Below, piece by piece: positions 137 to 60,842 of a stretch of DNA of 64,000 bases (its first letter is position 1; each line of letters begins with the position of its first letter). Source of the stretch: Thalia democratica (taxonomy: Eukaryota); contig OZ241826.1 of assembly GCA_965202585.1 (NCBI GenBank), positions 93,992,001 through 94,056,000 on the forward strand. Direction: 5' to 3'. The position numbers and the translations under genes were made by a program. A model generated the notes under the pieces. That model had not been told where the DNA came from and did not search any database. It was given only the letters and a program-made list of their open reading frames with translations.

Positions 137-894
137 GTCTGGCTGTAAATGCAAAAAAAATATTAAACTTATAGTTTCAGTTTTTTTCGGAATCACAAAT
201 ATTGATTTTCTAAGTATAAACTTACTGGTAAAATCAGCAAAAGTTATTTTTGATAATCAATATTTTCTTATCATTTCACTTGTTGGGAAACAATGCTGAA
301 ATTAATTTATTGAAATATTTTAATACTGAAACTAGTTTGAAACTAAGTTTTTGTGTTTAAGCAAAGAGAAAAAACTTTGACGACACCAGTTTAATAAAAA
401 AATCATCTCTTATCAAGTTTTAAATTAATTGTTTCCTAAGTTTAAAACACTTGTCAGTTTTTATTACATTAGCAAGTTCAAGCGAAAATTATCGAAAGTG
501 TTTCTTTTCACTCCCTAATGAATTTCATTCGCTACACGCGTAAACTTGCGGTTTTTATTTTCCCTTACTTTTTAAGTGTTCTGTTACGAACTTCAAAAAA
601 ACCTATACAGTTTTCTTTGCTTTCGCTACAATTCCAAGAATTTTTTTCTTTATTCATATTCAAGCCTCTAGTTTTAAAACAGTGATTTTGTGAAACTTAA
701 ATGTTTTATAGACATACTAAGCTTTCAAAGTTAAAATGTAAACCAAATCATGCACGTTTAAAAAAGATTACAAAACGGAAACACCTGCATAAACAAAAAT
801 AAATCAATGTTATCTCGATGTTTAGTTTATTTTTAAACCGTACTCCTTTGATTATAAATAAAATGGATATTTATAAATTTCTATGACAAACTTT

Positions 895-929
895 TCTTTT
901 CTCTTTTCCGTCTTTGTTTCGATATATAG
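895..929 (+). promoter_or_regulatory. Candidate splice acceptor for subgenomic env mRNA
   Basis: Long polypyrimidine tract (TTCTTTTCTCTTTTCCGTCTTTGTTTC) then AG at 928-929, 35 nt before the likely env ATG at 964. Confidence 0.4.
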
Positions 930-963
930 CGAACATCGTTTTGAAGCAAACATTTGTTTAAAG

Positions 964-2685
964 ATGTTCCGTGTAGTAGTTTGTCTGATTCTGGTCCTTA
1001 TTATAAAAGCGGATGAGGTTATCCGTAAGCAATACTTACCGCTTTGCGAAAACTTTCCAGTAAAAGCCTACAAGCTGACAGACCCAGGCCCTTGCAAATC
1101 TTATAACGCCACACAAATAGTGTCCCCTGTTGACGTTTACAGACCAATAGACGACACGAAAACATTAAAAGCAATTGCATGTAGAGTTAAAATTGAGTAT
1201 CATGAGTGTACTTATTATTTTTTCTTTTCCAAAAACTGTATTTTGAAAAAGGTCGAATATCGACCGGTAGACGCTGATACATGCAAGCGTGCAGAAAGAA
1301 ATAGGGTTACAAGGCAGGGAGTCTTATCCCCAAAAACTGATAAAACACTTTCATCCAGAAACATTCTTAAACCAGTGTTTAGTTACCCGTGGACCACGGT
1401 AAATAAAGTCGAGAATTTTATACTCGCATTTATAACGGTTAACAAAGAGAGATCTTCGAAAACGTTTTCTCACATAACACTTGGAACTTTAAGATGTAAG
1501 CAAGAAGAAAAAGTTTGCTCAGCTGATAACTGGATCATCGTATACGAGGAAAAAATAGAAAACAGTTGCAAAGACCCACCAAAAATAAAAAATACCAGTC
1601 TGGTTTTGCACACTACGGCAAACGGCGTAATTTACGAGATTAAACAAACTAATCTCATTTCCACGATTCTTTCAAAGTGTGACGATAAAGTAACTAGATG
1701 TATACCTACAAAGGAAGGGGAAAAACTATTATGTTTTCTTTCCGGTCACGTCATTAAAATCAATGAGAGTGCAAATGTTTCATCGACAGAAGGGTTATTG
1801 ATGAACACTTCAACAAAATTCAAACAATTGTATGCAGCACTAGCAACAGTCGCAAATATAAATTTGTTAAACACACAGCTACTGCAGCGTGTTTTCGAAA
1901 ACGCGCTATGCAAGAACGCACGAACTAGTTTAGTAAGTTTAATGGGGTCTCAAAAGTTTAACCCTTCGAAAACTTTAAGCTTCCTGTTGGAAAGGGAAGT
2001 TAATGCTGTTTTCTCGGCTGGATTGTTACGCGAACTTAAGTGCGAGATGGTTGAGGCATACTTGCAACCAAGTCTTAATTATAAAGGTCGCATTTCTGAC
2101 CGACCTCTTTTTCAGGCCTATGTTGGTCTGGGGACGGTAATGACAAGCCTCCGTCAGGGGCGTTTCTTGTCAAAACATATTTCAAATACTGTTTTTACCG
2201 CAAAACAAAAACACTTTGAGTTCCGTGACAACGTTTTACTTTTTGAAAACGAAACGCTTGTGAACGAGCGACCTTCGATTCATCGAATAACAATTAAAAA
2301 TTTAAATCTTAAAGAAAAATTATTTGCAATCAATGAAAGCGAAATGGCAAAAGACATTGAACTTATTACTAGTTCTGAAGAAGAAAATACAAAGGAACAG
2401 CTGAAAAACCTCATCTATTTAACAAAGAAAACATACGAGGCCCAAGGCATTGATATCGAACCTTATCTATTGGAAGGCCAAGGGTTCGATTTTTCTTTTC
2501 TTACGGACATTTTCACATCAGTAACTTCCGGAATATGGGGGAAGGCAGGAAACATCATCGATATTCTGACCAAAGTATATACGATTGCAATATCCTTGCT
2601 TCTGATAACGGTCATTGTTCAATCAGTACGAGAAGGAATGTCAAAAGTTTGCGGAAGAAGAAGGGCGATACAGGTTGAAACTTAA
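964..2685 (+). CDS. env: Envelope-like class III viral fusion glycoprotein (gB / mononegaviral G-like)
   Basis: Signal peptide from Met28 of the ORF (MFRVVVCLILVLIIKA), 14 ectodomain Cys, several N-x-S/T sequons, and two aromatic loops (CTYYFFFSKNC, VFSYPWTT). The segment LCKNAR..KFNPSKTLSFLLEREVNAVFSAGLLRELKCEMV..ISDRPLF parallels herpes gB [46 protein letters not shown]. An amphipathic membrane-proximal region, a C-terminal TM helix and a short basic tail follow. No stops. Confidence 0.85.
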   Translation: MFRVVVCLILVLIIKADEVIRKQYLPLCENFPVKAYKLTDPGPCKSYNATQIVSPVDVYRPIDDTKTLKAIACRVKIEYHECTYYFFFSKNCILKKVEYRPVDADTCKRAERNRVTRQGVLSPKTDKTLSSRNILKPVFSYPWTTVNKVENFILAFITVNKERSSKTFSHITLGTLRCKQEEKVCSADNWIIVYEEKIENSCKDPPKIKNTSLVLHTTANGVIYEIKQTNLISTILSKCDDKVTRCIPTKEGEKLLCFLSGHVIKINESANVSSTEGLLMNTSTKFKQLYAALATVANINLLNTQLLQRVFENALCKNARTSLVSLMGSQKFNPSKTLSFLLEREVNAVFSAGLLRELKCEMVEAYLQPSLNYKGRISDRPLFQAYVGLGTVMTSLRQGRFLSKHISNTVFTAKQKHFEFRDNVLLFENETLVNERPSIHRITIKNLNLKEKLFAINESEMAKDIELITSSEEENTKEQLKNLIYLTKKTYEAQGIDIEPYLLEGQGFDFSFLTDIFTSVTSGIWGKAGNIIDILTKVYTIAISLLLITVIVQSVREGMSKVCGRRRAIQVET

Positions 2686-10245: not shown

Positions 10246-10626
10246 ATGGAGTGTACTGATCGTGATATGCAAGCTTGCAACCATTATTTTGCTAAAAGAG
10301 TTCATAATGAAATAGATTTTTTGTTTCCGAAACCCTTGTATCCAAATTTAAGTATCAATTACAATGAAGGATGCAACTTTGCTTTCATTAATTTCGGAGG
10401 TACAGGCGTACAAGGATGTGTGAAGTATAACAGATTTTATATTTCTGTCGACCCGTTTCGCCCTGGTAACCAAGTTACAAATTGTAGTTACCCATTTTCA
10501 CCATATGTCATAACGGGCAGGTTGATGTTGGATGATAAGTTTAAGAACGTTCATTTTTCTTGGTTAAAAATTGAGGATTTGGAAGCAGATCTTATTGGTT
10601 TGGAAAGAAAAGCTAGAAATTGTTGA
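10246..10626 (+). CDS. 126-aa orphan protein, copy A
   Basis: GC-richer ORF with an acceptor-like TTTTTAG shortly upstream. The paralog at 49562 has the same length and an intact frame. No recognisable domain, no signal peptide. Confidence 0.8.
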   Translation: MECTDRDMQACNHYFAKRVHNEIDFLFPKPLYPNLSINYNEGCNFAFINFGGTGVQGCVKYNRFYISVDPFRPGNQVTNCSYPFSPYVITGRLMLDDKFKNVHFSWLKIEDLEADLIGLERKARNC

Positions 10627-22578: not shown

Positions 22579-22925
22579 ACTAAAACATATATAATGAAGT
22601 ATGTATTTAAAAAGAAAAACAGCATTGTATCACTTTTTATTAAGCAGTTATAAAGCTTTGAATTATTTATGTAGTTTCTTGGAAATATTTTATAAAACAT
22701 AAATAATGTATGTATAAACAAGGATTACTTCTTTCTTAAATTCAGCTACAAAGAAAGTCTCAAAATATTTTTAAAGACACTGAAATAATGGAAAGTATAT
22801 TCAAGTATGCTTGATTTTAATACTATTGAATAAACAACCTTATTGCAGTTTTGTTTTAATTAGTGTAGAATAAATAACATTTTTCAGATACCTTTCCTGG
22901 AGATGTGATAAAATGCTTGAAAGTT

Positions 22926-24320
22926 ATGAAATTTAACCAAATAAATGTTGGTAAAGATTTTAAAAATAGTGTGCTTAAACTCATGAAGAGTAAAATAAAA
23001 CCCAAAAACGTAGCGACTTTTTATTTTTTTTCTAAATTCTACAACTTGAATGACCTTTCTAAATTGACTTTGAAATATATTGAACTTTGGTTCACAACAG
23101 TTGCCGAAACTAACAACTTCTTAGAGTTAGATTTTCCACTGATGAAACGAATTATTTTAAGCTCTAACTTACACATCACTTCAGAAATTGAAGTTTTCTC
23201 CTCGGCAAATGAATGGGTAAGTTACAGGCCTGATGAGAGAACAAAACATGCAAAAAGTGTTTTGTCATTAATTCGCCTCCCTCTACTGACGGAAACTGCT
23301 CTAGTACAAGTTTTAAACAAATCCACATCTTTTCATGAAGCTGATGAGTGTTTAACACTAATAAACGAGATACTTGAAAATATAGAAATGTACTATAAAC
23401 GCTCGCCAAGTTCATGTTTCACAGCGAGATGTTACAAGGAAAACAACTTTGATGTTTTGCACTGCGGAGACTATTTCTCATCGGTAGACACAGGTAGTTT
23501 CATGAACAAAATAGATGGTAGAAATTTGATTAGATGTAGAAAAGCTAGTTCGCTCACAAAAAACCGTTATTTTCCATATTCTTCCACACCAGTGGTATAT
23601 TTAAAAGGTCATGTTTATTTGTTAGGATGTTTATACGTTGAAGGTAGAGATTTAAAAAAAATTGAAAAATACTCAATTGCTACTGATTCTTTAGAAATTG
23701 TAGGAGATATGTTTGATAATCGTCGTCGTTATTCTGCTTGTGGCTTTATAGGTAAAGTTTATTTTATTGGAGGTGAGTTAGCAAATAAACATACAGCAAA
23801 TTGCATATTTTTTGATACAAATGACAACACATGGGGTAATGTAGCAAGCATGAAAGAAGCTAGATCAAGTGCAGCTTGCACAGTATTTGAAGAAAGAATT
23901 GTTGTTTCTGGTGGATATAACGGTGAGTTTTTAAACACTGTTGAGGCATATGACCACATAGCTGATGAATGGGCATACATGCCAAGCATGAAAGAAAGAG
24001 CATCGAGGCATAGTTTAATTGCTATTAAGAACAAATTGTTTGCGATAGGATCTGATAAGCAATTTCTTGAAATGTACGACTCTACATCCAACGCATTTGT
24101 ATTTATTAATCATTACCCAAGCTATACATCTGGCATGTATTCTCCATATTCTTGGCTCACTCACGCCATAGGTATTGGGAGAAAAGTTTTCATTTTTAAG
24201 TTCGAAGCATCTGAAGCTCTTTGTTACGATTCTGACGAAAATGAATGGTCGAGTGAATCTTGTTGCACACCAACAAACGGTAGCAACTTCTTTTTGACGA
24301 TTCCAAAACTGGAGGTATGA
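22926..24320 (+). CDS. Kelch-like protein (partial BTB, BACK domain, Kelch repeats), 464 aa
   Basis: BACK signature (FLELDF..ILSSNLHITSEIEVFSSANEWV..IRLPLL) and Kelch GG/W repeats (VYFIGG, NTWGNVASMKEARSSAACTVFEERIVVSGG, DEWAYMPSM). The first true ATG is at 22926; the ORF track starts on GTG. Acceptor TTTTCAG ends at 22887. Confidence 0.9.
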   Translation: MKFNQINVGKDFKNSVLKLMKSKIKPKNVATFYFFSKFYNLNDLSKLTLKYIELWFTTVAETNNFLELDFPLMKRIILSSNLHITSEIEVFSSANEWVSYRPDERTKHAKSVLSLIRLPLLTETALVQVLNKSTSFHEADECLTLINEILENIEMYYKRSPSSCFTARCYKENNFDVLHCGDYFSSVDTGSFMNKIDGRNLIRCRKASSLTKNRYFPYSSTPVVYLKGHVYLLGCLYVEGRDLKKIEKYSIATDSLEIVGDMFDNRRRYSACGFIGKVYFIGGELANKHTANCIFFDTNDNTWGNVASMKEARSSAACTVFEERIVVSGGYNGEFLNTVEAYDHIADEWAYMPSMKERASRHSLIAIKNKLFAIGSDKQFLEMYDSTSNAFVFINHYPSYTSGMYSPYSWLTHAIGIGRKVFIFKFEASEALCYDSDENEWSSESCCTPTNGSNFFLTIPKLEV

Positions 24321-36714: not shown

Positions 36715-38249
36715 GTCTAAATTATGAGGAAAAGCTGTTAAAATTTAAAAAAATTGTTTGATTGAGTAATTAAGCTAGTCTAAAAATTTTAATCAAAAAT
36801 CAAGTTACATTTATCGAAGTAAAAGTAATTAAATATATAATGCTAACTTATTTTAATTGGGACCGAAAATTTAAAAGTTAAACTACGAAACAATCAGTAA
36901 ACTCAACGTTAAAATTAAAAAAAGGCTAGCTAGTATACAAATGTTTTCAATTATACTAATAATCAATACGTTCGAATTTTAAGTTCATTCCAACTTTAAA
37001 TTTTCTAACTTTTAATTTTCGTTGTTAAAAAAGTTTTTAAATACAGCAAATATATTTTATTTTTTTTAAATAAAACAAAAAATTCCTTAACAATTATAAA
37101 ACTATAAATAAGTAAAATAAAAAGAACAGTATTTGTATATTTCAAGTATTATGATACTCATTCAAGTCATCTAGTATGCTGCGTACTTTTTATTATTATT
37201 TATATTTATTTAAAATTAACCTATTTAAATTATAAATTCAATTATACTGAATAGTAGATTTCAATTATTATCTTTCTAATTAATAATCTAACAAACTAAC
37301 TAAAGTTCAGGATGTAAAGAAATAAAAAAGCACATTTTAATTTGTCAATTACAAAATATTAGATCTAAAATTTGTCTTTATAAAGTTACTAATTATAAAA
37401 TAATTTAACTGTTTTAATATAAGTGTAAAATTCAAAATTTTGATGAATTTTTAGTACAAAACCTACTAAATGTAATTAACTTTTAGATAAATTATATTGT
37501 AAAAAATACGTACATCTTAAACTATAATATAATTTAAAGTTTGTTGTAATAGAATTAAAACAGTTATTTTTATAAAGAAGCTTATGCACTTGCCAAAAAT
37601 ATATTGAATTGAATAGACAAATTAGTATCTATTTAATAACAGTAACACAAAATTTCTATGAATAACTACTTTTCATTTATACAACAAACTTTATTGATTG
37701 TTAATTGCAAGATGACAAAACTTGAGGTAATTTACAGAAGTACAAACAAGACAGTAATAATTTACTGATAGTTTTCTAAGTAGTTGTAACATATTTTCAA
37801 AAGTTAATTGCAAAAGTTGAACATGTGGTATAAAATAACGCAGATACTTTTGTTTTCATCTTTTACACTAACATAAACTATATTATAGCAAATAATCGCA
37901 TTCTAATTGTAACTGTTTTTATTTTTAAATTAATTGAAATCATGTTAAAGATTAACTTTAGGTACTTATTACAATATGTCATACAAAAAACTAAAATCAT
38001 AATAATCATGGTAAAACTAAAGTTAAAAAATAATTAATACTCAATCTGTAGACGAAAAAAAAAACCTCAATTAATTATTATTGTAAATTTGTCAAATATA
38101 AAAGTTATATTATTTAATTGAATTAAACTTAAACTAATTAATTTAAATATGTTTTCAATTAAGTAATTTTTGTTCTATTCATAAAATTTACTGATCATTA
38201 AACTGTGAATTTGTCAACAACAGGGATTTAACCTTAAAACATTCAACTC

Positions 38250-38700
38250 AGAGAGTCAATTTGATTTAAAACACAAGTTAATTCTTTATGTTAGTTTACT
38301 TTGTGGTCCATCTATTCTTAAATTCTTCTTGTTATATATCTTCTATCTGTATTTGCTCTTTTGTAACAGAAAAATGTAAATTTCAAAAAATGTTAGTTTT
38401 TTACTCACCAAAAACATTTCAATAGTACAAGATCCTCTCTCACACTTACTTTTTTTATTCTCTCTCATCATTTTAACCAAATCTTCACCTTTGAAATGAA
38501 TTTTTTTGCAATAGTTTTCTATTTGATAATCGAAAGCTACAATAATCTATTTGTATACAAATTAGATGTTTTCAATTTGTTCAGTATTCACGACACTAAA
38601 AGTGCTAGAGAGTACCGTAAAAAGAAAATTATTTTTCAGGAGTTCAAAACTAAGTTTAAACAAATACTTGAAGTTAAAGAGACAAGGTCTTAAAAGCTGA
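38250..38700 (-). pseudogene. Decayed unknown ORF
   Basis: One minus frame reads about 110 codons with only two stops (..EQIENI*FVYK*IIVAFDYQIENYCKKIHFKGEDLVKMMRENKKSKCERGSCTIEMF..). Confidence 0.35.
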
Positions 38701-39882
38701 ATAATTGAGAGAAAAGCGAGTTTTTTAAGTGTTTACGTTTCTGTAGATTTGCTGCAGAAACGTACCCAAGCTACGTGTCTGCTTTCTAATGAAATTACTA
38801 AATAGTAATTGCTTTAGACCTGTACTTAAGCAGTAGATAAGTTAGCTCATATATGTTACATAATGTTTTTAAGTTTTTTTTTCAGCTATTTTTCATTTAG
38901 TTCTAAAAAAATTACTACTTTTTACCACATTAAAAAAATTAAAGGTTATTTAAGAAATTGACCAAAAAAATATGTTAAAGTATATTTAAGTTTTTTAATT
39001 TAAATTTGAAACTAAAATATTGTAGCTATCAAAAGTTACGTACTCTTAAAAGGTAATTGGTTTGAATTTCTAAAACTTATGTCTAACTTTGTGTTTAGGG
39101 GATATGCTATCAAGCTGATATACTTTCATAGTTTAATGATCAGTACATTTTATAATAACAAAACGAACTGAACTAAGTCTTTAAAGCATTATTATAGATC
39201 TTAACATAAAAAGCAGCTTAACGTTACAATCAAACTTAATTTAATCAAACTAATATACTATACCTTTTCAAAAAAAGGTACAAGCTATAAATTTTGTTTT
39301 ATTAATCTCAAAAAAAAACTATGTTATTTTAGTTTTATTTCTGCATTATATAAAACTAAGTTTTAAATTTATTTTCTATTCTAATTAGCAAACACAACAG
39401 AGTCATTTATAAATTTTAATTACGACTGATTAAGAAAAGCACAGTAAATTAAAAATAATGATAAAATAATGTTGCTGCCTTTTAGAGCATAGAATGGTTT
39501 CACCACTTTTTATTAAAATTTTACCTATTTTTTGTTAATATTTAGTTCTAATTATTATATATTTTTTTAAACTAACTTTAAAAGTATTTGTCAAAAAGTA
39601 TTTTGTAAATAGTTTTGAGCCTGATTCCTAATCGTTGATTATATTAAACTCTGATTAATTAATAAAGTATAAATACCTTCATAGAAAAGCTTAAATGTTT
39701 TTAAAGAGATTTAAGCTTAAACAGTGTATTGTTAAAAATTTTTTTTAATTTAACATCTAAACTTAATCTAGTTTATGAAAAAAGATAAACTCATATTTAT
39801 ACTCATACCTTTTTTTTTATGGTTACTTGAAAGTTTTTATTTATTCTCTGAAATTGTTACATTTTTCAGCTAAAGTTTCAAA

Positions 39883-40566
39883 ATGTCTCAGTTTAGTAGA
39901 AGTGAATTAGTGTCTCTTGCTGAAATGTGTCATAAAAATTATCGTCATGAGGATGTAATTAGCTACATGAAGGAAGTAATTAAAATGGGAACACCACTCA
40001 ACTTTAAAGAAAGAAATATCATATTCTACAGTTACAGTCAGCTAATAAAACCATATATCAATTCCTTTATTTCCTGTGATGATTCAAGTGTAGATGCAAA
40101 ACTACAGAGGGAAATAAATCAGAAAGCAAAATCAGAAACAAACAGGATATCTGATGATGTTATTGAGTTGTTAAATAGTTATTGGATTAAAAGAGACAAC
40201 AATATCGAGGCTGTTGCAGATTACAAACATTTTAAAGCAATTCAACATGAGTATTTAGCTGTTACTGCATCACGACAAGTGAGGAATTCAGCAATCAGTA
40301 AAGCAATGAAGTTATATGAGGAAGCATATGAAATTGCAAGTAAAAATCTTAGTCCTGCCTATCCACTTGTAATTTTGATTGCATTAGATCTTATAAATTT
40401 TTGTATTTTTTTTGAGGTTTCTGTTAATAACGCTCTTACTATTGCTATTGATGCCTACGACAAAGGTTTGTCTCATCTACAAGAAATACATGAGGAGTTG
40501 AAGTTTCGTGCTAATGAATTGCTAGTTGTATTAAAACAAAAAATCGATGATTTGAAACAGCTGTGA
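39883..40566 (+). CDS. Divergent 14-3-3-like protein, copy 1 (227 aa)
   Basis: 14-3-3 framework: ELVSLAE..EDVISYMKEV..LNFKERN, KLYEEAYEIASKNLSPAYPLVILIAL. Single-exon CDS; TTTTTCAG acceptor 13 nt upstream of the ATG. Confidence 0.9.
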   Translation: MSQFSRSELVSLAEMCHKNYRHEDVISYMKEVIKMGTPLNFKERNIIFYSYSQLIKPYINSFISCDDSSVDAKLQREINQKAKSETNRISDDVIELLNSYWIKRDNNIEAVADYKHFKAIQHEYLAVTASRQVRNSAISKAMKLYEEAYEIASKNLSPAYPLVILIALDLINFCIFFEVSVNNALTIAIDAYDKGLSHLQEIHEELKFRANELLVVLKQKIDDLKQL

Positions 40567-41964
40567 AGTTTTTGGTATGCGTTTGATGAACTAGAACTTT
40601 GGTTATCAATTTATTTTTATTGACTTAGTTTAATAATGTTGTTGTTTAGTTTCGTCTAAAAAACTTGTTTAATAAATTAAACTTGCTAAGTAAGTCTATT
40701 AGTTTTGGTAAATTAAACATATGTTTTGTTTTATGTAAAAAAATCTTCAGAAGGAAACAAAAATATTTAAAGGTTTAACTAAAAACATTTAATAGATATA
40801 ATGGTAGATTAAATCAGTCATTAAATTTGTTACTTTCGTCTGAAAGTCAGAATTCTTAAATTTGACTGTTTTCACTAATTTATTATTCTAATTAAGTCGA
40901 TAATCTTCTGAAGTATGTTGTTGTTTTGACTTGCAGTTCAAAATTTTATTTTTTCAGATAAGTTTAAAATTACTTCGGGCCTTGTTTAATTAGTTTGTTG
41001 ATGTGGGTATGTAAAATTTAAAATAAACTATAACAAGTTATTATAAACTACTCATATACCTTACTTTTACATCGTATACGCTTTGAAATTTGTCTGATTA
41101 TGTTTAAGTTATAACAAAATTGATAAAATCAAAGTTTGCATCATTATCTATTAACAACTGAATAAATAGATATAAATAGACTACAATATAACTAAAATCA
41201 TTAGCACAAAAAAATATTATTAAAATCTAATATAATATATTTAACGATAAATTAAAATTTAATATAAATATTCAAATTATAACGCTTAAAACTGATTTCG
41301 ATATATTATTTGAAGTTGAAACATAACTTCAACAACAGATAGTGATAGTCGAAAACAACTTTAGCTAAATCTATTGACGGCTCTAAAAATCAAAAAATAA
41401 AAATCTGGCAAAAGAAAAGCTAAAATAAATTTTGGAACTTAAACACTACCGCGGTGTAAACGAATTAAACAACAATTTTACGCTATTAGAATTGCTCAGA
41501 ACGATTTAAATACATTCTATAAAAATACTTTTTTATCAATATTCAAATGCAAACTATTTTTGGAAAGTTTTTTTTAATTTTTGTTTGTGCAGTTAAATAA
41601 GTTTTGTATTGCAGCTACACCAAGCTTTTCGACACGTAACCGAAAACCGTTGAACGAGAAAAAAAAGAAAAGCCGCGAGCGCTTAACATTGGTACGTTTT
41701 CAACCAAAACTTTTTGCTGACTTTCAATTAAAATAAAATCCTACCGCGTATAAACTTCTCAAGTAGGACAAGAAATGGTTAATGACACCACAATCACCAC
41801 CACTTTGGTTTTCTAGCTTAAGAGCAGGATACCTTTTTTCAAGATTTCAAACCTCTTTTTGTTTTACAAAGTTTGTTCAAAACTGTTGTAAAATTTACGA
41901 ATGATAAAAAAGAGATAAATAGTTTTAATTTAACGATTTTATTTTAAAGTGATGTAAATCAAAA

Positions 41965-42200
41965 GGGTATATTCGTGCAAAAGAGACGCTTCGAGAAAGT
42001 TAAAATCGTGCAAAATTGACGATCTTTTTGTATGGGAATGTATTCGGGTTAGAATTAATTGGGTGGAATTAGATTTAGGTGAGAAATGTTCAAATGGAAA
42101 CAGATTCGTGTAGGTATTGATTAGATAGGAATTGATTCTGGTTGTAGTTAATTGATAGGGATCTTTCTGGATTGGAATTGTGGCTAAATTTAATTGTTTC
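41965..42200. repeat. Adjacent fragments of two MITE families (CGTGCAAAA array; AATTAATTGGGTGGAATT type also at about 25180-25260)
   Basis: Motif matches to other copies within the window. Confidence 0.5.
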
Positions 42201-49561: not shown

Positions 49562-49942
49562 ATGGAGTTTACTGATCGTGAAATGCAAGCTTGCAACCAG
49601 TATTTTGCTGAAAGATTTCATAATGAAATTAACTTTTTGTTTCAAAATGCCTTGTATCTAAATTTAAGTATCAGTTACAATGCAGGATGCAACTTTGCTT
49701 TCATTAATTTCGGAGGAACAGGCGTACAAGGATGTGTGAGGTACAACATATTTTACATTTCTGTCGACCCGTTTCGCCCTGGTAACCAAGTTACAAATGG
49801 TAGTTACCCATTTTCATCACATGTCATAACGGGCAGGTTGATGTTGGATGATCAGTTTAAGAAATTTAATTTTTCTAGGGAAAAAGTTGAGGATTTGTAT
49901 GCAGATCTTATTAGTATGGAAAGAAAATCTATAAATAGTTGA
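49562..49942 (+). CDS. 126-aa orphan protein, copy B
   Basis: 96/126 aa identical to copy A with no indels; acceptor-like TTTTAG upstream. Confidence 0.8.
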   Translation: MEFTDREMQACNQYFAERFHNEINFLFQNALYLNLSISYNAGCNFAFINFGGTGVQGCVRYNIFYISVDPFRPGNQVTNGSYPFSSHVITGRLMLDDQFKKFNFSREKVEDLYADLISMERKSINS

Positions 49943-56331: not shown

Positions 56332-57000
56332 CTAATTCCAACTGTCAATTTTTTCTTTTAGTTTTTCTAGTGTTTTGTTAGCTGCGTCTTTGAACTCTTC
56401 TGGTAAACCGGATAAACTTTTTTCGTAAGCTTCAGTAGCAAAAGAACGAGCTTTATCAGTTAAACCAAGTGAACAAAAAAGAAAGTCAGAGTAATACAAC
56501 GCAATAATAACTGCAACTGGATGTGCTGGATTGAGATTTTTATTCGCTAAATCGACTGCTTCCTCAAAAAGTATTGATGCTTCATTCAGTTCTAGTTCTA
56601 TATCTTCCCCTGATGCAACAAAAAATTTACTTTCATGTTGAACAGCTAGAAAGGATTTGTAATCAGCAACAGCCTCGATATTGGTATCTCTTTTGATCCA
56701 ATAACTATTTATCAGTTCAATAGCATCATCAGATATCCGATTTATTTCTGAATGGGCTTTCTGATTTATTTCCCTCTGTAATTTTTCATCTACTTTCGAT
56801 TCATCACAGGAAACAAAGGAACGTTGATATGGAATTTTAAGGTTTTGATAACTGTTGAATATCATAATTCGTTCTTCAAAGTTAAGAGGTGTGCCCATTT
56901 TTATTACTTGTTTCATGTAGCTAATTACATCCTCATTACGATAATTTTCATAACACATTTCAGCAAGAGACACTAATTCACTTCTATCAAACTGAGACAT
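56332..57000 (-). CDS. Divergent 14-3-3-like protein, copy 2 (222 aa)
   Basis: Paralog of 39883-40566; the upstream region 57001-57660 is an inverted homolog of about 39160-39882. Confidence 0.9.
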   Translation of the reverse strand: MSQFDRSELVSLAEMCYENYRNEDVISYMKQVIKMGTPLNFEERIMIFNSYQNLKIPYQRSFVSCDESKVDEKLQREINQKAHSEINRISDDAIELINSYWIKRDTNIEAVADYKSFLAVQHESKFFVASGEDIELELNEASILFEEAVDLANKNLNPAHPVAVIIALYYSDFLFCSLGLTDKARSFATEAYEKSLSGLPEEFKDAANKTLEKLKEKIDSWN

Positions 57001-60000
57001 TTTGAAATTTTAGCTAAAAAAAGTACTTATTTTAGAATTTGAATACAAAGTAGTAATATAAAAAAAAATATGAATTTAAAAGGAGTTAAACTTTTTTTTG
57101 TTAAATTAGCTTAAGAATTAAAAAAAATATACATACTTAATATTAAATTCATTTTTTTAAACAACATACAGTATAAGCTTAAGTATTTTCAAAAACAATA
57201 AAAGCTTCTCTATGAAGGTACTTATACTTTATCAATTAATCTAGCAATCAGTTAATTAGAATACTGTTTTTTTTTTAATTTAATAGAAATAAGTATTAAC
57301 AAAAGCAGGGTGAAAATTTTAATAAAAAGTAGTGAAACCATCACATGGTCTAAAAAACGACAACATTATTTTATTATTATTTTTTAACTTGCCATATTTT
57401 TGACATTTTGTCGTATTTAAATTCTATAAAATTATTCTGTTGTGTTTGTTATTAGTTAAAAAAAAATTCAAAATGTAGTTTTATTTATTATATAAAAAAA
57501 AAAACATACTGTATAATTGAAATTAGTACAATATAATTTATAGCTTGTATCTTTGTTGCATAAAAATATTAGGTTGATTAAATTAAGTTTCATTGCAACG
57601 TTTAGCTGCTTATTAGATTAAGGTCTATAAACAACACTTTAAAGAATTAGTTTAGTTCGTTTTATTATTATTAATAAAATAAGAAATTTACACTAAATAT
57701 TGTTTTCGTTGTGCATTAAAAATTTAATTGTTTTGTCTATATTTAATAAAAATTTGATTTTAGTATCTTTTATTTAACAATTCAAACAATGTAAAATAAA
57801 AATAACAAATTGATTACTTGTCACTACAACTTATTTAGATATATTTCAAAAATAAAAACAAAACATCTACGCTAATCAAAAGTGCATTTAGGAAATTTTT
57901 AGTTAAAAATCTATTTATAATGTTTAGGCAAAATTTTAAAATTTTGAAAAAAAAATGTTTAGAGTGCTTTACCAATAAAAAATGTGTGTATTTTAACGAT
58001 TTTAAAAAGTTTTTTTTTCAAGTTTAGTTTTTTTTTGCTGTCTAATACTTGTGTAGATAAAATACTTTGTTACTTAATCAAAATAAAATGTTAAGATACA
58101 ATTAAAAACTTTTTAGTGGCAATATAAAATACTGTAGTGAAACTGTATTAAAAAAAAAGAAAATAAGTATTTTTTAAAGCTAAATACTTAGTAAATGATA
58201 GTTAACAAAATATAACGTACAGTTAAATATATACTTAATTATAAAATACCTAAGGACAAACTGAATTATTTTGTTGTTCTTAATAAACTGATAAAAAAAT
58301 GTTTTATTTAAAGTAGTTATTATTTATGTTTAATTTAATATTTAAAACAACTCAAATAAAGTTTACAAAATAACTAAATAGTTTTTTCTGTTTCGAAAAT
58401 TTACTAAAGTTTGAACTTTTTTAAGGTCAAACTTTTAAAACTCACCGTGGAATAAGATGTTATGAAAAATGGGTAAAAGTTCAAACTTAAAAAGTACACT
58501 GCTTATAAGGCTACTCAAACGAATAAAATAAAGTGAGCTTAAAGTTTTATTTAGTGATCAAATTTTACAAACTCATAAAAATTTTACTGCAATGCTCTAC
58601 TTTTGCAAAAATATAACTTAAAACGATAAACTTTTGCTCGTATCTTCGAGAATATTATACACACAATATTCTAATCTATGTTTATAATTTTAATAAATGT
58701 TTATAATCATTTATTCTTAGTTTAGTTTTATAAATAATTCAAAATTTATAATTTTTTTTTTTTTAATAAAAACGTTATCAAATGTTATTTAAAACATCCA
58801 ATAAAAAATATTCAATAAAAAACTTAAAAATAACGCATCATATTTTTTAGATTATACTTTGCCTTAATTACATTAAATTTTTTTGGTCTCATTTTGTTTT
58901 CAATTTTTGGTTTTGTACTAAAAAAGTATTTTTTAAGTTTCCTTTTTTAACTTGTTGTAAAAAAAGTACTTTTGTTCTTAATTTTAGACTGATTGCTTGA
59001 ACCTAATAATGGTAAGCTGATATTTAAAAAGTAATGTAAAGCCCCTTAAAAAAAATATTTATGAGTTAATTATAACTTTCAAATTTTAAAGCTTTTAATA
59101 TCTCATGTAAAAGTACAATATTTGTGGTAATAAATTTTTATTAGGGTTTAACTTTAATTCTCTAGTTATTAATAAACTCTCTTATCTTTTTATAGTAAGT
59201 TGTACATATGTGAAATTTAATAATACTTATTGAAATGTTAAACATAATTGATTTATTTTGTCATATTTTCATTATACTTTATCTCTTAATCATTGTTTAA
59301 AAGATTGAGAACAACTTCACCTTAGTTGAAACTACAAACATTACTAGTACGCATTCGTACTTTTTAAAATGATGTTAAATTTAACTTGAAGAATTGAAAA
59401 AATAAATATTATAGGCTAATATGTAATAAAGCTAATAATAGATTAATCATTTTTAATGTTTAATCCTGATTGCTACCAGTTAGTTAAATAATACCTCAAT
59501 CATTTAATTATAAATTACATTTTTAAAGCTTGAATCTTTAAAAATTAAATTAGATGATAGACAAAATAACTGAAGCTCTAATTTTAAAGTGTCATACGAA
59601 TAATCTATTTAAATATGTAAATTGTAATAAAACAAAATAAAAAACTTCTCCTTCATATTTATTTTCAGATTTTGATGAAAATATTTAATTGATTTTAAAA
59701 AATACAAACTTTCATTATTTTGAAAGATTCTTAGATGCAGAAATAAGCTTTTTATATGTACTCCTCTTTGTAAGTAATAAACCCTTGAAGTTTGATACTT
59801 TAATATTTGTATTTAAAGAACTCTAATAATAAGTTTTGTTATGTAATATCAAAAAAATTATACATATAATTCTTTTGAATAATAGTTTATGATTCGAGAT
59901 AAAAGTATTTTTCATTTAATGAAATTTAAAGTTTTGTTAATTTACTTCTATTCGAAAACTATTTCACCGAAAAATGACAATTAATTTGTTTAGACTTTTA

Positions 60001-60191: not shown

Positions 60192-60842
60192 ATGTCTAAG
60201 TTTGATAAAAGTGAATTAGTGTCACTTAGTAAAATTTGTCATACAAATCATTTTTATGAGGATGTAATTAGCTACATAAAAGAAGTGATAAAAAACGAAA
60301 CACCTCTTAATTTTGAAGAAAGAAGTATGTTATTCGAAAGATATGGGAAGTTTACACAATCGTATGTTAATTCCTTTTTTTCCCCGTAATGACCCGAGTT
60401 TAAATGCAAAAATACGAATAGAATTAAACCAGAAATCATAATCAAAAGTTGTCAGATTTTTCTTTAAAGCTATACAATTGTTAGACAGTGACTGTGTCAA
60501 AAGAGATACTGATGATGAAGCTATTTCCTGATTACAAACGTTTTAAAGCATGTTTACATTTAGAAAAAGCTATATGAGGAAGCATATGATATTGCAAATA
60601 AAAATCTCAATCCAGTGCATCCAGTTACACTTAAGATTGAAGTTAATTTTTCTTCATTTCTCTTTGATATTCACGAGTTTCATAAAGCTCTTCCCATAGT
60701 TAGAGAAGCCCACATAAAAGGTTTTTCAAACCTATTTGCGTTACCTGACGAGTTAAAAAACAGTGCTAAAAAGTTTTTTGATGTACTAAAGAAGGACATC
60801 TTGGATCAGGCTCAATTTAGTTTCGGAATTCAATCATGGTAA
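60192..60842 (+). pseudogene. Divergent 14-3-3-like pseudogene, copy 3
   Basis: Starts MSKFDKSELVSL at 60192. Frameshift near 60380, in-frame TAA, further shifts near 60530 and 60570 with a deletion, then resumes KLYEEAYDIANKNLNPVHPV. Confidence 0.9.

Follow-up and report, generated by a model that had tools for sequence, protein, structure and literature searches.

A 64,000-nucleotide stretch of the Thalia democratica genome (the window; C1:93,992,001-94,056,000, on contig OZ241826.1, in an 801.8-Mb assembly whose largest pieces span 40-117 Mb) carries three members of a large family of 14-3-3 homologues in which the basic residues that clamp phosphoserine and phosphothreonine have been replaced. 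Two of these members, copy 1 and copy 2, are intact, and the third, copy 3, is a pseudogene (Table 1). We give about an even chance to the reading that copies 1 and 2 encode phosphorylation-independent, probably dimeric modules that have a 14-3-3 fold without its phosphate pocket and that come from an amplified, lineage-specific clade. Below, L-numbers denote genomic or metagenomic loci extracted for comparison, and C1, C2, C4 and so on denote chromosomes or pieces of the assembly.

Against the Pfam 14-3-3 profile PF00244 (223 positions, cut-off 33.2 bits), copy 1 scores 85.4 bits (E=5.5e-24) across positions 2-218, and copy 2 scores 72 bits across positions 2-223. The two proteins are 60% identical. 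By phmmer, copy 1 also aligns with 14-3-3 zeta and beta chains of the Protein Data Bank (PDB) at E about 1e-21. AlphaFold2, given an alignment of 57 sequences that included the canonical gene (alignment A2), folded copy 1 into nine helices plus a short turn with a predicted local distance difference test score of 95.6 and a predicted template modeling (TM) score of 0.91. The top Foldseek matches of this model in the PDB were exclusively 14-3-3 chains (TM 0.81-0.91 at 22-25% identity), with TM scores of 0.86-0.91 against human 14-3-3 beta and zeta. Copy 1 is confidently modeled as a nine-helix 14-3-3 fold, and both intact copies would encode a cytosolic protein with the full complement of helices. 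The 14-3-3-like assignment made in a preliminary description of this DNA is borne out by the Pfam match and the fold model of copy 1. Both proteins end within or just past helix I and lack the acidic, disordered C-terminal tail of canonical 14-3-3s, a region that is hydrophobic or long and acidic in other subfamilies of the family.

14-3-3 proteins are among the most conserved in eukaryotes, and their Lys-Arg-Arg-Tyr phosphate clamp is regarded as near-invariant. Phosphate is contacted by Lys49, Arg56, Arg127 and Tyr128, and the ligand groove is formed by helices C, E, G and I (PMC3962474). We called the equivalent residues in a HMMER alignment to 14-3-3 zeta and in a MAFFT alignment to L001, the genome's canonical 14-3-3. 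Both alignments place Ser, Gln and Gly at K49 and Ile, Gln and Val at R56 in copies 1, 2 and 3, respectively. In copies 1 and 2 they agree on Glu at R127 in both proteins, Tyr and Ser at Y128, His and Ser at K120, and Ile and Val at D124. All six replacements had been proposed in the preliminary description, and formal alignment left the basic residues absent from the pocket. A seventh, N173 to Asp in copy 1 and Tyr in copy 2, was recovered by MAFFT; HMMER opens a three-residue gap that puts an Asn of copy 1 at N173, so the call is alignment-dependent at that position.

The loss extends to all 48 intact full-length family members that we collected from the genome. The K49 position holds Lys in none and Arg in six; the R56 position holds Arg in one and Lys in four; the R127 position holds Arg in four, Lys in one and Glu in 10; and Tyr is present at Y128 in nine. 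Not one member has basic residues jointly at 49, 56 and 127, whereas L001 retains Lys, Arg, Arg and Tyr at the four positions. Because the K49/R56/R127 cluster with Y128 is replaced, canonical clamping of phosphoserine or phosphothreonine would be impossible. The remainder of the groove departs from canonical 14-3-3s as well: N224 persists in 3/48 members, E180 in 2/48 and N173 in 13/48, and the conserved set of backbone- and side-chain-binding residues, including the hydrophobic roof (Asn173, Asn224, Glu180, Leu172, Val176, Leu216, Ile217, Leu220, Leu227, Trp228), is mostly replaced and hypervariable.

Across the five-residue basic cluster (49, 56, 60, 120 and 127), the mean per family member is 0.52 basic and 0.42 acidic residues, where canonical proteins have five basic ones, and the mean net charge of the groove is -0.6. 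By composition, the family groove reads as neutralized, often hydrophobic or aromatic, and not as systematically charge-reversed. The preliminary description, which spoke of a pocket lost and partly charge-reversed, was therefore right about the loss, which is general, and right about the reversal only locally, as the R127 to Glu exchange is confined to 10 of the 48 members. Its suggestion of basic ligands finds no support in a groove that is neutral or hydrophobic-aromatic and has no systematic acidic character. In a C4 subfamily, aromatic residues fill 8-10 of 26 groove positions, which are nearly identical in seven members. These loci (L055-L061; C4 73.3-74.7 Mb, and C8) form a divergent subfamily with Phe, Tyr, Tyr, Phe, Trp, His, Tyr and others lining the groove, a composition that is the family's best hint of a groove still in use.

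A PF00244 scan of the genome returned at least 146 matches, and a scan with a family-only profile built from 22 members (A1) returned at least 158, with the best 150 of 308 candidates scored. Among the matches listed, about 68 cover the full domain, about 49 of them free of internal stops and at least 19 broken; the rest are fragments. The preliminary description had portrayed the open reading frames (ORFs) as intact and multi-copy, which is true of copies 1 and 2; copy 3 is frameshifted and has lost the hydrophobic tail of its subfamily, and the copy number had been understated. All family members are single-exon, and most are gathered in tandem arrays (Table 1). Ordinary 14-3-3 genes coexist with them, namely the intronless, epsilon-like L001 (L001:1408-2205:-, 352 bits against Pfam) and several others, on C6 and C9, that match exon by exon.

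Phylogenetic analysis (FastTree; 48 members and 38 canonical sequences) united the family in one clade with support of 1.0 and a stem length of 1.18 substitutions per site, beside a sister group that holds L001 and epsilon-type proteins. The separate clade envisaged in the preliminary description is thus recovered, with every one of its 48 members devoid of the phosphate cluster. Derivation from an epsilon-type 14-3-3 is likely, with the reservation that the tree is a FastTree phylogeny with a long branch. Every deep branch lacks the basic cluster, including the basal single-copy member L054, so the pocket was most likely lost once, on the stem of the family. The founder of the clade would most likely have been an intronless epsilon-type gene.

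Close paralogues resemble each other well outside their ORFs, over 0.7-1.46 kb upstream and 0.17-1.46 kb downstream, and this holds between C1 and C2 copies too. Copy 1 can be aligned with L020, L019 and L005 across 731 bp of upstream sequence (blastn, oriented loci), and about 241 bp of 5' flank is still alignable between copy 1 and the subfamily of copy 2. Homology that runs beyond both ORF ends, and between chromosomes, indicates copying of DNA segments and not of processed mRNA. Tandem and segmental duplication at the DNA level would have carried the family to more than 100 loci, with birth and death of copies ongoing. It is highly improbable, by comparison, that the members arose from a 14-3-3 mRNA by reverse transcription, as dispersed processed retro-pseudogenes. 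Such an origin would account for a family composed wholly of single-exon members in a genome where other canonical genes match exon by exon, but L001, the closest canonical gene, has no introns either, so that the lack of introns can be inherited. Moreover, paralogue homology continues 0.7-1.5 kb beyond both ORF ends, copies sit in tandem arrays and reading frames are maintained; on the flanking homology and the kept frames, retroposition was rejected as the copying route. Transposon capture was also considered and rejected, the shared unit being without convincing terminal inverted or direct repeats. An Rfam scan of window positions 36000-62000 gave no match.

Reading frames in the family have outlasted neutral expectation. 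When neutral change was simulated on a 227-codon ORF at the base composition of this genome, the frame was still open in 14% of cases at 5% change, 3% at 10% and 0.1% at 20%. Intact paralogues differ by 0.5-0.8 synonymous substitutions per synonymous site (dS), and copies 1 and 2 have a ratio of nonsynonymous to synonymous rates (omega, or dN/dS) of 0.51 at dS 0.565. Frames that remain open at dS 0.5-0.8, where neutral survival is 0.1-3%, indicate that the family has been kept as coding genes. Counting substitutions along a tree of 32 core members gave an overall omega of 0.60, and 0.57 outside the groove (bootstrap confidence interval [CI] 0.51-0.65). The frame and scaffold of the family are under constraint, which is tightest in helix B (omega 0.28), helix D (0.42) and the start of helix C.

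The groove behaves differently. At 16 groove sites drawn from the literature (PMC3690454, PMC13067609), omega was 0.89 (CI 0.69-1.20), and nonsynonymous and synonymous counts differed from those elsewhere (Fisher's test, p = 3e-4). An earlier list of 26 groove sites gave 0.93; it had been drawn up after per-site counts were glimpsed, and we prefer the 16-site literature list. Thirteen of the 16 sites rank in the family's top 30 for variability (p = 1e-10). These 30 positions lie overwhelmingly (25/30) in helices C, E, G and I at a spacing of 3-4 residues, which places them on one face of each helix. The groove is much less constrained than the scaffold. Variability within the family showed no correlation with conservation among canonical 14-3-3s, for which the canonical sample, with 105 near-invariant columns, was too uniform.

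Constraint is also evident between species. Three near-orthologue pairs, formed with marine-metagenome contigs of a close relative, have omega values of 0.82, 0.28 and 0.39, or about 0.43 when pooled. L054 (C9:20415664-20416302) is the best-conserved pocket-less member, with a between-species omega of 0.27 at dS 0.36 and 82% identity. Its orthologues on Tara contigs from several samples (L084-L086), which belong to another species, show omega of 0.05-0.13 among the variants of that species, and they too are without the pocket.

The residues that form the dimer salt bridges of 14-3-3 zeta, which we take to be E5, R18, D21, K85 and E89, all have equivalents in copies 1 and 2, and D21 is kept in 37/48 and K85 in 40/48 family members. 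Dimerization, ligand binding by the groove and expression of the genes are all inferences. Selection is predicted to hold the frame, the helical scaffold and the dimer-making N-terminal half, leaving helices C, E, G and I free to change on the side that lines the groove. The product would be a phosphorylation-independent, probably dimeric binding module whose groove specificity differs by subfamily, putatively hydrophobic-acidic in copy 1 and aromatic-rich in the chromosome-4 subfamily.

A T-run followed by CAG or TAG precedes the ATG by 9-13 nt (19-24 nt in five outlying members) in 35/48 members under a strict pattern, and most of those failing the pattern show the motif by eye; random 45-nt windows contain it in 11% of cases. 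In sequence the motif looks like a 3' splice acceptor, serving either an intron in the 5' untranslated region or a spliced leader. Other ORFs in the window are preceded by similar T-run acceptor-like motifs.

About 50 family-like protein clusters were found in public data, all from marine metagenome assemblies and none named; databases of named proteins do not contain the family. The family-only profile A1 was used for the profile search, one with A2 having been swamped by ordinary 14-3-3s. Relatives came only from Tara Oceans and other marine samples; there were none in viral contigs or in metagenome contigs of the Joint Genome Institute (JGI). The three best-matching public runs, compared with window positions 38000-42000, cover intergenic DNA too, which marks them as whole-genome DNA and uninformative on transcription. 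The ESM Atlas cluster nearest to copy 1 is mostly of Chordata. A distant look-alike in the same resource is a nematode cluster mixing PF00244 with DUF7758, which may represent a further divergent 14-3-3-like family restricted to one lineage; in Pfam, copy 1 had no match to DUF7758.

Several results weigh against the proposal that copies 1 and 2 are phosphorylation-independent modules. Omega in the groove never significantly exceeded 1, with either the 26-site or the 16-site list or when split by tree depth (1.04, 0.86 and 0.84), so that positive selection was not detected; a groove omega indistinguishable from neutral fits a functionless groove and a diversifying one equally well. An overall omega of 0.5-0.6 is weak constraint, some young pairs lie near 1, and at least 19 full-length copies and many partial ones are broken. 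The homodimer prediction for copy 1 scored 0.62 and one unrelated control 0.52, so that it counts neither for nor against a dimer. A search of public runs with the stretch gave no RNA run, and none of the approximately 50 family-like clusters came from MERC, a catalogue built from 775 Tara metatranscriptomes in which the canonical 14-3-3 cluster has four members. The absence from MERC argues weakly against abundant transcription of the family in bulk plankton, and stage- or tissue-restricted expression is still compatible with it.

Near-neutral omega in the groove at all tree depths is what would be seen if the groove had no ligand and the proteins acted as dead subunits, their conserved N-terminal half pairing with canonical 14-3-3s or with each other. 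Pairing of this kind would leave the phospho-clamp with one hand instead of two, or would titrate canonical subunits, and corresponds to the dominant-negative partners proposed in the preliminary description. We regard this as possible and rather unlikely. It agrees with the concentration of constraint in helices B and D and at the start of helix C, with the dimer salt-bridge residues kept in copies 1 and 2 and most members, and with the presence of pocket-bearing canonical genes in the same genome; yet more than 100 loci in many deep subfamilies are hard to explain for a generic poison subunit, and the homodimer prediction yielded no evidence of a dimer. The chromosome-4 aromatic groove, near-identical in seven members and mostly also relative to a member at dS about 0.5, points to a groove that is used.

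It is unlikely, too, that the family is mostly junk, in a genome that readily amplifies single-exon genes, with only a few founders such as L054 functional and most copies, perhaps copy 1 included, decaying young duplicates. The many broken and fragmentary copies (copy 3 among them), close pairs with omega near 1 (copy 1 against L020, 1.03 at dS 0.11) and the lack of transcript support in the public-run search and MERC would all follow. However, copy 1 and its relatives are open where 0.1-3% of neutral frames survive, the pooled omega outside the groove has a CI that excludes 1, subfamilies separated by dS about 0.56 still have the acceptor and about 240 bp of conserved 5' flank in common, and near-orthologues from wild samples have omega of about 0.4. 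By analogy with TRIM or NLR-type variable domains, the groove-facing sides of helices C, E, G and I might instead be a hypervariable recognition surface under episodic diversifying selection, the family forming a birth-and-death repertoire of variable binders, perhaps against viral or transposon proteins that hijack 14-3-3; we consider this decidedly doubtful. Of the interpretation put forward in the preliminary description, which is partly supported overall, the phosphorylation-independent pseudo-14-3-3 clade is supported as far as sequence, fold and selection go, and the new ligands find no support in the groove omega.

Animals are known to have a handful to about twenty 14-3-3 genes, and canonical 14-3-3s are generally under near-total conservation, in contrast to the family's omega of about 0.6. 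Plant surveys likewise report a handful to about twenty genes, against more than 100 loci here. With canonical epsilon-type 14-3-3s (PF00244) the family shares homology (85 bits), a nine-helix fold (TM about 0.9), core length, the helix B, C and D motifs, the dimer salt-bridge residues and, as its nearest branch, L001; it differs in being without the K49/R56/R127/Y128 cluster in all 48 members sampled. On sequence grounds its members are best described as true 14-3-3 homologues that fail the defining functional feature of 14-3-3, the phosphate cluster.

The closest precedent among the systems compared is the pair Cp14a and Cp14b of Cryptosporidium parvum, very divergent paralogues beside a canonical epsilon form (PMC3154893). 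Cp14a, which has no C-terminal tail and did not respond to mode I-III peptides, was discussed by its authors as a possibly degenerate 14-3-3; both proteins nevertheless keep the Arg-Arg-Tyr (or Arg) triad, which is only mis-oriented in Cp14a (PMC3154893). Cp14a and Cp14b are thus single genes with the triad residues, whereas the family described here is a 100-locus radiation from which those residues are gone. SMG5, SMG6 and SMG7 also have a 14-3-3-type helical domain outside the classical family, and phosphorylation-independent contacts have been described for SMG6. The SMG domains, however, belong to large multidomain nonsense-mediated decay factors that bind phospho-UPF1 as a class; the family consists of stand-alone proteins that score only on PF00244 and branch inside or beside true 14-3-3s. 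A literature search found no paper on an expansion of pocket-less 14-3-3s.

With more than 100 loci, of which about 50 are intact, the family is a natural radiation in which the fold and the dimerization half are kept, the clamp is discarded and the groove face is varied. If its members are expressed, the 14-3-3 scaffold would prove reusable for phosphorylation-independent recognition, and dozens of natural groove variants would be available for structural and binding work. If they are dead partners, they would represent a new way to tune 14-3-3 signaling.

Table 1. Family members, flanking elements and genomic arrays (positions of copies, motifs and blocks are those of the window)
Feature	Location	Strand	Remarks
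Copy 1, single-exon coding sequence	39883..40566	+	Uninterrupted ORF, 227 codons (amino acids) plus stop
Copy 2, intact coding sequence	56332..57000	-	Different subclade; 222 amino acids plus stop
Copy 3, pseudogene of 249-amino-acid tail-bearing subfamily	60192..60833	+	Four pieces, three frames, several in-frame stops
Acceptor-like polypyrimidine plus CAG motif	39861..39869	+	13 nt 5' of copy 1 ATG
Acceptor-like T7AG motif	57014..57022	-	13 nt 5' of copy 2 ATG
Upstream block, putative promoter/5' region	39152..39882	+	About 731 bp; 85-92% identity with paralogues on the same and another chromosome (blastn)
Downstream block, common to all close paralogues	40567..40734	+	At least 168 bp; 1464 bp or more with L020
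Array	C1, 1.06 Mb, window included		About 47 matches
Array	C1 36.6-37.6 Mb		
Array	C2 18.9-19.2 Mb		
Array	C2 73.5-73.7 Mb		
Array	C6 76.1 Mb		
Divergent group	C4 73.3-74.7 Mb		

Some members of the family carry additions to the 14-3-3 core. A 249-amino-acid subfamily in the C1 array (L006, L010, L013 and L018) ends in a strongly hydrophobic stretch of 22 residues (Kyte-Doolittle mean 2.1-2.3), a terminus that suggests tail-anchored, membrane-bound 14-3-3-like proteins, and sometimes keeps Arg at the R127 position. Two loci at C2 74.37-74.38 Mb (L079:301-1512 and L080:301-1503) encode 400-403 amino acids, with a long, charged and probably disordered C-terminal extension in which an acidic motif of the type SSDDYD-x-D-x-SF is repeated; they keep R127 and Y128 and have lost K49 and R56. 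Open frames of 280-390 amino acids with 1.5-2 partial 14-3-3-like domains (L068-L072; C1 94.82 Mb, C2 18.88 Mb and C6 76.12-76.15 Mb) look like internal duplications or fusions within arrays.

The surroundings of copy 1 in the window are very AT-rich (about 25% G+C) and gene-poor. Positions 38134-38803 form a very high-copy repeat, with a summed unitig depth of 20,000-50,000 in whole-genome runs against a few hundred nearby. A 600-amino-acid ORF at 883-2685(+) carries hydrophobic segments at both termini and has no Pfam match. Also without a Pfam match is a paralogous pair of 126-amino-acid ORFs at 10246-10626(+) and 49562-49942(+), each preceded at about 25 nt by an acceptor-like T-run and TAG. 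An ORF at 22905-24320(+) encodes BACK and Kelch repeats, has TTTTTCAG 17 nt upstream and probably represents a downstream exon of a BTB-BACK-Kelch gene.
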